DNA of 61,865 nt, filler included, from Trichosphaerium sp. ATCC 40318 (Eukaryota > Protista > Tubulinea): assembly GCA_038496445.1 (NCBI GenBank). It is 3 parts of 3 records of this genome, joined end to end, with 100 filler letters (N's around TTAATTAATTAA, not from the genome) between each part and the next. Parts side by side here need not be neighbours in the genome. Positions count along the whole stretch, not along the records: positions 34,968 to 61,865 come from JALMLS010000053.1; 2 more parts are not named here. One strand, given 5' to 3'. Within the stretch, counting starts at the first letter, position 1, and every line of letters begins with the position of its first letter. A program made the position numbers and the translations under genes. The notes beneath the pieces are model-generated. The model had not been told where the DNA came from. It ran no database searches and saw nothing but the letters and a program-made list of their open reading frames with translations. This document shows, in pieces, positions 50,752-53,219 of this stretch.

Positions 50752-53219
50752 TTAAAGCATCTTGGCGACAGCATCACGCTCTGAGATGAGTTCTTTGTGG
50801 GTGGCTTCCATACGCTCAGCAGAGAATGGATCAATTGGAACGTCTTGTACGACTTGTGGTCCTTCTGGGCCGCAGATAACTGGGTATGAGTATACAAGAC
50901 CCTCAGTTACACCTAATTAAAAATGAGAAAAAAAAAACCATGAACACAAGATAGCGCGAACGTACCATATTCTCCAGTGGATGGGATGGCGACTGAAGTC
51001 CAGTCTCTAGTTCCGTGAATCCAGTCATGGACGTGGTCGACAACAGCTGAAGCAGCTGAAGCAGCGCTGAAAGGTAATGTTAATACCAAAAAACAAAACG
51101 AGCAAAAAAAAACTGTTTAGATTGATTTTGTTGGTATTTGAAACCATTGCTTTCAAAAAAACTCTACAAACTCAGAACACTAGTTGTGCGTCATATAAAC
51201 TCAGATGAGCTGGGTGTAATTCATCACGTAGATAAGGACCAGAAAAAATAAAAAAATAAAACACAAAGGAGGAAAGGTGTACTCTTAAAAATTTAGAGCC
51301 TTTTTGCTCAAAAGAAATGAAAAGGAGATAAGTCTATCGTACCTTGAAGCACCTCTTGCGCCAATAATTTCAGCACCACGCTTTTGTACGCGAGGGATGA
51401 ACTCTTTTTGTACCCAAGCTTGGTTGTTGATAACTTCACGGACAAGTTCGAGTTTGCCGTCTCTCTTTACGGTGGTGTGGGAGATATCTGGGTACTGAGT
51501 AGCAGAGTGGTTACCCCAGATGCAGAATCTGTTCAAATCAGTGACAGAGCAGTTAATCTTGTCAGCGAGCTAATAAACCGTGAGTACAAAGGTTTGATAC
51601 ATAGTAGAACACTTTTGATACGTACTTGGGCGAGACCTCTGTTGTGGTCGAGTCTGGTCAAAGCAGAGAAGTATTTACCTTCTCTACCACTGTTTGCTTG
51701 AGCGATAAGAGCGTTTGTGTTAGCTGGGTTACCTGTTTAAGAAAGTTAACGATTACAAAATTCATAGCAAATAAAAAAACCGTACCGACTACAACGACCT
51801 TGCAGTTACGCTTGGCAGAGGACCCGATGGCTTTTCCTTGTGCTTGGAAGATCTTGGCGTTCTCCATGAGCAAATCACCACGTTCCATACCCTTTGAGCG
51901 AGGCTTAGATCCAACCAAAAGAGCCCAGTCAATTGTGTCGAAACCTACAATAATGATGAGAAAACACTCAATGGACCAAAAGGAAGATAAGTATTCTATC
52001 CATTCGGGGTTTTTTATGTACCTTGTTTCAAGTCGGATGTTGGTACGATTCCTTGTACTAGAGGGAATGCGCAATCCTTGAGCTCCATAACAACACCTTC
52101 CAAGGCCTTCATGGCGCCAGGAAGCTCAACCAAATGAAGAATGACAGGTGTGGTAGGACCGAACATTTGTCCGCTAGAAAATACCGTAAATATTACAGGT
52201 TTGCATTATAATGAAAACCGCTGCAAAGAAGCTTTGTCGTACCTAGCTACACGGAAAGCAAGAGCGTAACCGATACTTCCAGCGGCACCAGTAATGGCAA
52301 CACGGACTGGTTCTCCAGTAGCGCCTTGTGAGACAGCCATGGAGTTGGATAGTTTTTGCCACCAGTTGTAGAAAGCTGGTTTGACGTTTCCGTTAGGCAA
52401 ACCCCAGTGTTTGTCCAAAACCTGTACAAGCAAAAAGTAAGCGAGTTTTACGTTTGAAAGAAACGAACAAAGAAGAAAAGACAATAGCGACCGCGTTAAG
52501 TATGTGGGAGGGATAGTAAGGGTGTATACGCTTAAAAATAAGAGGATGGAGTTTAAAAATTTAAATGACGCGTTTTAATATTTTACTGAGTTCAATTTGA
52601 GCGCTAAAGTACGATTCCATTTCAAGAGTGGTTATTTTGAGTGTAATGCGGCAAAAAAAAAAGTTTTTGGATAAGGAGTAAGCGTACAGGGAGGATGGCT
52701 TCTGTAGCGTCAGAAATGAAAGCAGATTGTCTCTTTGCGTCAGCGCGAAGGGAGTCTACAGCGACCTTTTTGACGAAGCGAGCTTCTGGTGTTTTGAGGC
52801 CAGTGGTATCAACGTTAGACTCAGAGAGGTCCATAAAGTCGATTTCTTGGCTAATTGGTGAAGCTTCGACAGCCGCAATCAGATCTTTGTATTTTGCTTC
52901 AGTCTCGCCAACATGTTTGATGATGCTTTTTGTAAAGAGGGAGGCAGAAACGAGAGTATCTGAAGGAAACTCTTTGCTTGCTTCAACCTTATCAATAAGC
53001 GCTTTGTGTGCTTTTGGGTCTTGGCCGACGCTCTTGATGACAGCGGTGAGGCGCTCAGCTACAACGGAAGTGTTGCTGCTCTTGTATCTACGTGGTACTC
53101 TTGTGGTTGTGTTTGCAGACACTTGAACACCTCAAGGGAAGATGAGCCTCACTTTGACACAAACAACATTTTTTCGCTTTGAAAAACACCGTACCGACTC
53201 TAGTGATTTTATTAAGCAT
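50752..53219 (-). CDS. mdh: Malate dehydrogenase (MDH1/type-2 family) with a mitochondrial presequence and a ~155-aa extra N-terminal domain; 8 introns
   Basis: [38 protein letters not shown]|[30 protein letters not shown]|SAASAA. First exon reads MLNKITRVG. Confidence 0.95.

Follow-up and report, generated by a model that had tools for sequence, protein, structure and literature searches.

A Trichosphaerium malate dehydrogenase gene encodes an internally duplicated N-terminal extension, a candidate module for docking the enzyme to ATP synthase

In Acanthamoeba castellanii, cryo-electron microscopy has established that a mitochondrial malate dehydrogenase (MDH), AcMito-MDH (ACANB11954), is an integral and active subunit of the ATP synthase (Fry et al., Cell 2026, PMC13632647; companion paper PMC13632651). 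The protein is 454 residues long and consists of a mitochondrial targeting sequence (residues 1-33), an N-terminal domain (34-106) and the MDH itself (108-443), with an extension of 76 residues folded into three helices (PMC13632647). The peripheral stalk of the ATP synthase carries the active dimer at its top, on OSCP, by way of the adaptor MASA (ACANB14707), a 25-residue helix of which is wrapped by the three N-terminal helices of each AcMito-MDH monomer (PMC13632647; PMC13632651). Integration cuts the Km of AcMito-MDH by about 85%, deletion of the extension reverses this effect, and the contact made by the N-terminal domain is also allosteric on Km; the structures are available as PDB 9ZFT, 9ZFW and 9ZFX (PMC13632647). 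Here we describe a gene of Trichosphaerium sp. ATCC 40318, referred to below as mtMDH, whose product has the same order of parts. It lies in a stretch of 61,865 nucleotides from assembly GCA_038496445.1 (the window, along which all positions are counted), within the portion taken from record JALMLS010000053.1. An earlier reading of this DNA, the original prediction, had pointed to a reported association between MDH and complex V in Acanthamoeba, and that association now corresponds to a solved structure (PMC13632647; PMC13632651).

Three other kinds of enzyme provide points of comparison. The Naegleria fowleri protein named "MDH2 (mitochondrial)" (PDB 6UM4) has 436 residues, and its source paper is silent on an extension (PMC7990177). 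Bacterial type-2 MDHs (Thermus 1BMD/1IZ9, Arenicellales) are 325-328 residues long and begin at the Rossmann strand, without presequence or extension, whereas mtMDH has both. Chloroplast NADP-MDH (7MDH, 1CIV) also belongs to the type-2 clade and has a regulatory N-terminal extension; such extensions act through regulatory cysteine pairs.

The mtMDH gene was read from the sequence as nine exons on the minus strand, running from an ATG at 53219 to a TAA at 50754-50752, with a coding sequence of 1551 nt (517 codons). The precursor has three parts: a presequence, a predicted-helical extension of about 165-168 residues and a complete type-2 NAD-MDH. Exon 1 (53195..53219) holds the ATG (53219-53217) and the first 8 1/3 codons of the presequence (MLNKITRV-G) and is followed by intron 1 (53131..53194; 64 nt, GTACGG...TTGAG). 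Exon 2 (52688..53130) encodes residues 9-156, namely the remaining presequence, which ends near residue 24 (...RVPRRY), and most of the helical extension. Intron 2 (52422..52687; 266 nt, GTACGC...GTACAG) divides this extension exon from the Rossmann exon, exon 3 (52421-52243). The first 27 codons of exon 3 (52341..52421) encode residues 157-183, the aromatic-rich last segment of the extension, and are in frame in the spliced transcript; the remainder (52243..52340) carries Met184, the start of the conserved core at E193 and the Rossmann motif. The N-terminal part ahead of E193 thus comprises 192 residues, presequence included; counted from the likely processing site to the internal Met184, it measures about 159 residues.

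The reality of this fusion was assessed with Logan contigs from four public runs, placed on positions 50700-53500. In each of three runs (X2, X15 and X18, from three studies), one contig of 1593-1827 nt spans all exon joints. The joint between the extension and the Rossmann exon (52419/52686) was found in the contigs of all three runs, skipping intron 2, and the depth of contigs inside intron 2 (52486-52673) was zero in the same runs. The joint between exons 1 and 2 (53128/53193) was found in the X15 and X18 contigs, which skip intron 1, while the X2 contig contains 8 nt of exon 1 followed by adaptor sequence. The X18 contig extends to 53235, so the 5' untranslated region is short. With every exon joined in single contigs of three independent studies, the extension to the Rossmann exon included, the fusion is real and expressed; two separate genes or an erroneous join do not account for it. 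The coding properties of the extension were also examined. The frame of exon 2 runs for 169 codons without a stop, which would occur by chance about 3 times in 10,000, and the choice among synonymous codons in exon 2 correlates with that in the MDH exons (r = 0.64). Five strain differences were seen in the transcripts, four of them synonymous third-position changes and the fifth the conservative replacement I105L. The open frame, codon usage and variant types of the extension are those of a constrained coding sequence.

The MDH portion was characterized exon by exon. Pfam identified PF00056 (Ldh_1_N) on exons 3 and 5 and PF02866 (Ldh_1_C) on exons 7, 8 and 9. The conserved core, which starts at E193 and comprises 325 residues (193-517), has the same length as the bacterial enzymes, and type-2 MDH N-termini in the PDB align from residue 36-37 of the exon 3 query. 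The GxxGxxG motif of the Rossmann fold is present as TGAAGSIG (G201-G207), and the acidic residue typical of NAD-dependent enzymes is found at the end of strand beta-2 (LVE232LP, aligned to LLEIP in Thermus). Alignment to a bacterial MDH and to PDB MDHs located the substrate arginines R282 and R288 (GSKPR282SKGMER288) and R351, together with the catalytic Asp-His pair formed by D348 (TRLD348HNR351) and H376 (WGNH376S). All PDB matches of exons 3, 4, 5 and 7 were type-2 enzymes (Thermus, Mycobacterium, Legionella, cytosolic MDH1, NADP-MDH and Naegleria). The exons are collinear with an Arenicellales (gammaproteobacterial) MDH, L001:997-1977, at 56-64% identity per exon; of three fragment alignments made with this MDH, two were partly misaligned and were discarded. 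The core collinear in bacterial type-2 MDHs and mtMDH has all catalytic and NAD-binding residues in common. Judged by these motifs and matches, the core is a catalytically complete, NAD-dependent type-2 MDH of the cytosolic/Thermus-like kind, to which it is closer than to the mitochondrial/E. coli type.

Exons 4-9 with introns 4-8 (50755..52173) encode the rest of the type-2 NAD-MDH, including E232, R282, R288, D348, R351 and H376, as supported by Pfam, PDB matches and transcript joints. The joints place exon 4 at 52173-52022, exon 5 at 51944-51786, exon 6 at 51732-51626, exon 7 at 51569-51343, exon 8 at 51066-50966 and exon 9 at 50912-50755, and the stop codon TAA follows at 50752..50754. The eight introns of the gene (50913-53194) measure 53-276 nt and, from their ends as read off the sequence, all have the form GTAC[G/A]...AG, with the 5' ends GTACGG, GTACGC, GTACGA, GTACAT, GTACGG, GTACGT, GTACGA and GTACGT. 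The 5' splice-site consensus is unusually uniform, as GTAC[G/A] was found in every intron examined, including intron 1 of the neighbouring gene (GTACAC). Most exons of the core resemble MDHs of uncultured gammaproteobacteria (Arenicellales, Steroidobacteraceae) more closely than they do animal cytosolic MDH1. These pairwise, per-exon identities fit the bacterial-like affinity known for type-2 MDHs of protists.

We then turned to the portion ahead of the core. Residues 1-24 carry a net charge of +5, contain no acidic residue (the first is E34) and show an RRY motif near residue 24. Positive charge, a lack of acidic residues and an RRY end are typical features of matrix presequences. The rest of the extension (residues ~25-192) is rich in Ala, Ser, Val and Lys, has a net charge of about -2, and contains neither a cysteine nor a hydrophobic stretch of membrane-spanning length. 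Within it we found a tandem duplication of a 35-residue unit, a new observation. Internal local alignment pairs residues ~26-60 (unit 1, 52976..53080) with residues ~65-99 (unit 2, 52859..52963) at 47% identity, with a BLOSUM62 score of 53 compared to 24.5 +/- 4.8 in shuffled sequences; none of 500 shuffles reached 53. The pattern IKxVG...KxLIxxVEAS is common to both units. The repeats are followed by an acidic linker, a long amphipathic helix (~123-155) and the aromatic-rich residues 157-183, which adjoin the Rossmann strand. This last part includes the segment AFYNWWQKL and is moderately amphipathic, with a hydrophobic moment of at most 0.31. An AlphaFold2 single-sequence model of exon 2 alone was all-helical, with six helices, at a mean confidence (pLDDT) of 43, which is too low for fold comparison. 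Because the duplication is significant, it speaks for a module that folds and against a disordered leader. Two roles were rejected: redox regulation as in NADP-MDH, as the extension has no cysteine (and the enzyme, unlike NADP-MDH, has the NAD-type acidic residue E232), and a transmembrane anchor, as there is no hydrophobic stretch.

Relatives of the extension were sought in several collections. Searched exon by exon, Pfam gave no match to the extension even at E <= 1. PDB sequences, in a set without the Acanthamoeba entries 9ZFT, 9ZFW and 9ZFX, returned nothing meaningful at E <= 10 for exon 2, for the 35-residue piece preceding the Rossmann fold or for a profile of the two repeat units. Exon 2 had no match in a word-indexed set of 5.8 billion proteins, for which only proteins of 81-257 residues were covered, and none among metagenome contigs of the Joint Genome Institute (JGI); a feature search of the ESM Atlas gave no usable match. 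An exhaustive phmmer search of exon 2 against 1.84 billion cluster representatives (E <= 1e-3) yielded zero matches and did not return the source protein either; this library thus lacks the source organism and probably relatives of it as well, and a helical segment of 30% identity would not reach the threshold at such a size, so that the absence of relatives is weak evidence. Extended eukaryotic MDHs were also sought through a bacterial MDH aligned with the exons as separate rows, which recovered only bacterial MDHs of 325-328 residues.

Taken together, these results bear out the observations behind the original prediction. It had described an Arg-rich, presequence-like start devoid of acidic residues, which the charge of +5 and the position of E34 confirm, and the peptides that it quoted are all present in the translated exons 1-3. 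Its in-frame splice from the extension to the MDH was recovered in the X2, X15 and X18 contigs; the fusion transcript that it proposed to look for exists as single contigs in three studies, and a separate transcript for the extension is not supported. The complete cytosolic/bacterial type-2 MDH that it recognized is upheld by the Pfam pair, the PDB matches and the full catalytic set, and the domain that it called unrecognised has indeed no relatives in the Pfam, PDB, protein, metagenome and Atlas searches. One description had to be corrected: the composition of the extension is Ala/Ser/Val/Lys-rich and not Ala/Lys/Glu-rich.

How does mtMDH compare with AcMito-MDH? The two share a presequence, a helical extension placed directly before the Rossmann fold (helicity being a low-confidence prediction in mtMDH) and a type-2 MDH. 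Subtracting the 107-residue leader from the catalytic His294 of AcMito-MDH gives a position of about 187 in type-2 numbering, and H376 of mtMDH minus 191 gives the same. As the catalytic His falls at the type-2 position in both, the two enzymes are of the same MDH kind, and both are of the active type. The genomes differ in composition, with a G+C content of about 38% in the piece bearing mtMDH as opposed to the G+C-rich genomes of Acanthamoeba. The Naegleria enzyme 6UM4 also resembles mtMDH in being a type-2 MDH that is annotated as mitochondrial and whose conserved core is preceded by about 93 residues. Among PDB entries it matches exon 7 best (83.8 bits) but is not the closest for exons 4 and 5, and chloroplast NADP-MDH is among the top PDB matches of exon 5. 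No similarity between the 6UM4 and mtMDH extensions was found in the PDB sequence searches.

These comparisons led us to a model in which the extension serves as a docking module. Residues 1 to ~24 would act as a cleavable presequence, removed after import, and residues ~25-192 would be kept on the mature enzyme as a helical domain. This domain would be built from two 35-residue helix-turn-helix-like units, the acidic linker, the long amphipathic helix and the aromatic segment abutting the Rossmann fold. In the dimer, the N-termini of both MDH subunits could assemble into a helical bundle by which the active enzyme is held on a partner, the most probable one being the OSCP region at the top of the ATP synthase peripheral stalk. 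The stalk is the likeliest partner because AcMito-MDH is the only characterised case: no other helical extension on a mitochondrial type-2 MDH has been assigned a function, and that one is an ATP synthase tether (PMC13632647). By this analogy, we tentatively consider a tie between the helical domain and the ATP synthase stalk to be the leading explanation, one in which our confidence stops somewhat short of even. The original prediction, which took the extension for a structural subunit anchoring a tricarboxylic acid (TCA) cycle enzyme to a respiratory complex and saw in it a candidate for a biological novelty, stands with regard to the real fusion, the complete MDH and a published tether with the same domain order; it does not stand as an unprecedented case, the concept having been published in 2026.

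Other readings of the locus have to be weighed against docking, and they differ widely in plausibility. It is very improbable that the fusion is an artefact in which two adjacent genes were joined by read-through or chimeric assembly, the upstream one ending in intron 2 at the stop 52622-52624. The unspliced frame of exon 2 does close 22 codons into intron 2 (open reading frame 52622-53122), and chimeras can occur among assembled contigs; yet an identical, canonical GT-AG joint, in frame, appears in three runs from three studies with zero depth in intron 2, the intron carries the gene-wide GTACG donor signature, and the 266-nt gap shows no sign of a separate 3' end or promoter. We also regard it as unlikely, albeit less remote, that the N-terminal part of ~183 residues is a long leader removed after import, or that the gene has a dual start, with Met184 opening a 334-residue cytosolic MDH. 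Met184 lies nine residues before the core and would yield a type-2 MDH of canonical length, and minor isoforms starting inside intron 2 are compatible with the contigs. Against this, the significant duplication with its conserved positions and the restriction of variation to synonymous or conservative changes point to a folded, selected domain, and the look of a targeting peptide is limited to the first ~24 residues, the rest having a net charge of -2. Moreover, the base at -3 is A at the first AUG and T at Met184, the two are separated by at least one further AUG in frame (Met108), and intron 2 is devoid of transcript coverage in three runs.

A far more serious possibility, to which we give nearly as much credence as to docking on the stalk, is that the domain is retained but has a role unrelated to ATP synthase, whether in self-assembly, in binding another matrix partner (citrate synthase, aspartate aminotransferase or a glyoxylate-shunt enzyme are candidates), in holding the enzyme at the inner membrane through AFYNWWQKL, or as an allosteric module. 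Several observations that weigh against docking on ATP synthase bear on this choice. The extension has no detectable similarity to ATP synthase subunits or to any other protein and, as no sequence relative was detected, its homology to the Acanthamoeba extension is unproven. Compared by published layout, the two extensions differ in length (~168 residues after the presequence in mtMDH versus 76 in AcMito-MDH) and in organisation, the tandem 35-residue duplication and the aromatic segment next to the Rossmann fold being features of mtMDH and AcMito-MDH being arranged differently. The authors of the Acanthamoeba study call the extension and MASA Acanthamoeba-specific, and the allosteric effect on Km in that system offers a precedent for a regulatory module (PMC13632647). 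The long Naegleria extension has neither a reported function nor a reported link to ATP synthase and, for this reason, extensions on type-2 mitochondrial MDHs may serve other purposes. A minor, shorter isoform of mtMDH may also exist, as it is compatible with the transcript contigs. Of the alternative roles, the membrane hold is opposed by a hydrophobic moment that reaches 0.31 at most and by the lack of a membrane-spanning hydrophobic stretch, and all of them have to contend with the fact that the one extension of this kind with a characterised function is a tether to ATP synthase.

The docking model has consequences beyond this gene. The 2026 structure cast the MDH-ATP synthase tether as the case of a single lineage, and mtMDH presents the same order of parts in a genome of very different composition. 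Together, the extensions of mtMDH and of the Naegleria enzyme suggest that mitochondrial type-2 MDHs with added N-terminal segments are a recurrent feature of protists, and mtMDH hints that tethers of this enzyme extend beyond Acanthamoeba. If docking on ATP synthase is true, mtMDH would provide a comparative system for the essential features of the interface, the dispensability of the adaptor and the rate at which the tether evolves; if the enzyme docks elsewhere, it would exemplify another way to wire the TCA cycle to a membrane. Two bolder readings seem unlikely to us: the duplicated extension could be a self-sufficient tether, in which an extra helical hairpin replaces MASA and places the dimer on OSCP in cis, or could dock to another respiratory complex. 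With a self-sufficient tether, the coupling of MDH to ATP synthase would be no invention of Acanthamoeba but an older trait, spread more widely among protists, whose interface evolves fast, and docking on another complex would represent a second, independent kind of tether between the TCA cycle and oxidative phosphorylation.

Upstream of mtMDH, a divergent gene on the plus strand starts at 53344, 125 bp from the mtMDH ATG, which leaves no room for further upstream coding exons of mtMDH. Exon 1 of this neighbour (53344-53429), seen in X2 and X15 contigs, begins MSSTILVSGGSGFIGKRLVASLKNKGHR and resembles the Rossmann N-terminus of a short-chain dehydrogenase/reductase (SDR) or epimerase. Its intron 1 (53430-53651) starts with GTACAC, the same contigs splicing from 53429 to 53652, and a later exon (54342-54650, plus strand) has a weak match to DUF1731. 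Given the divergent arrangement, the distance of 125 bp and the transcript contigs over exon 1 of the neighbour, a single compact bidirectional promoter serves both genes. In eleven further runs (X4-X14), which are labelled as one metagenome and five other organisms, 6-13% of the 31-mers of the mtMDH gene are present, which could come from related species or from carry-over of this organism into other samples. Elsewhere in the window, a stop-free stretch on the plus strand (38227-38511) matches the PHD finger (PF00628, E = 8e-6) and is probably an exon of a chromatin-reader gene.

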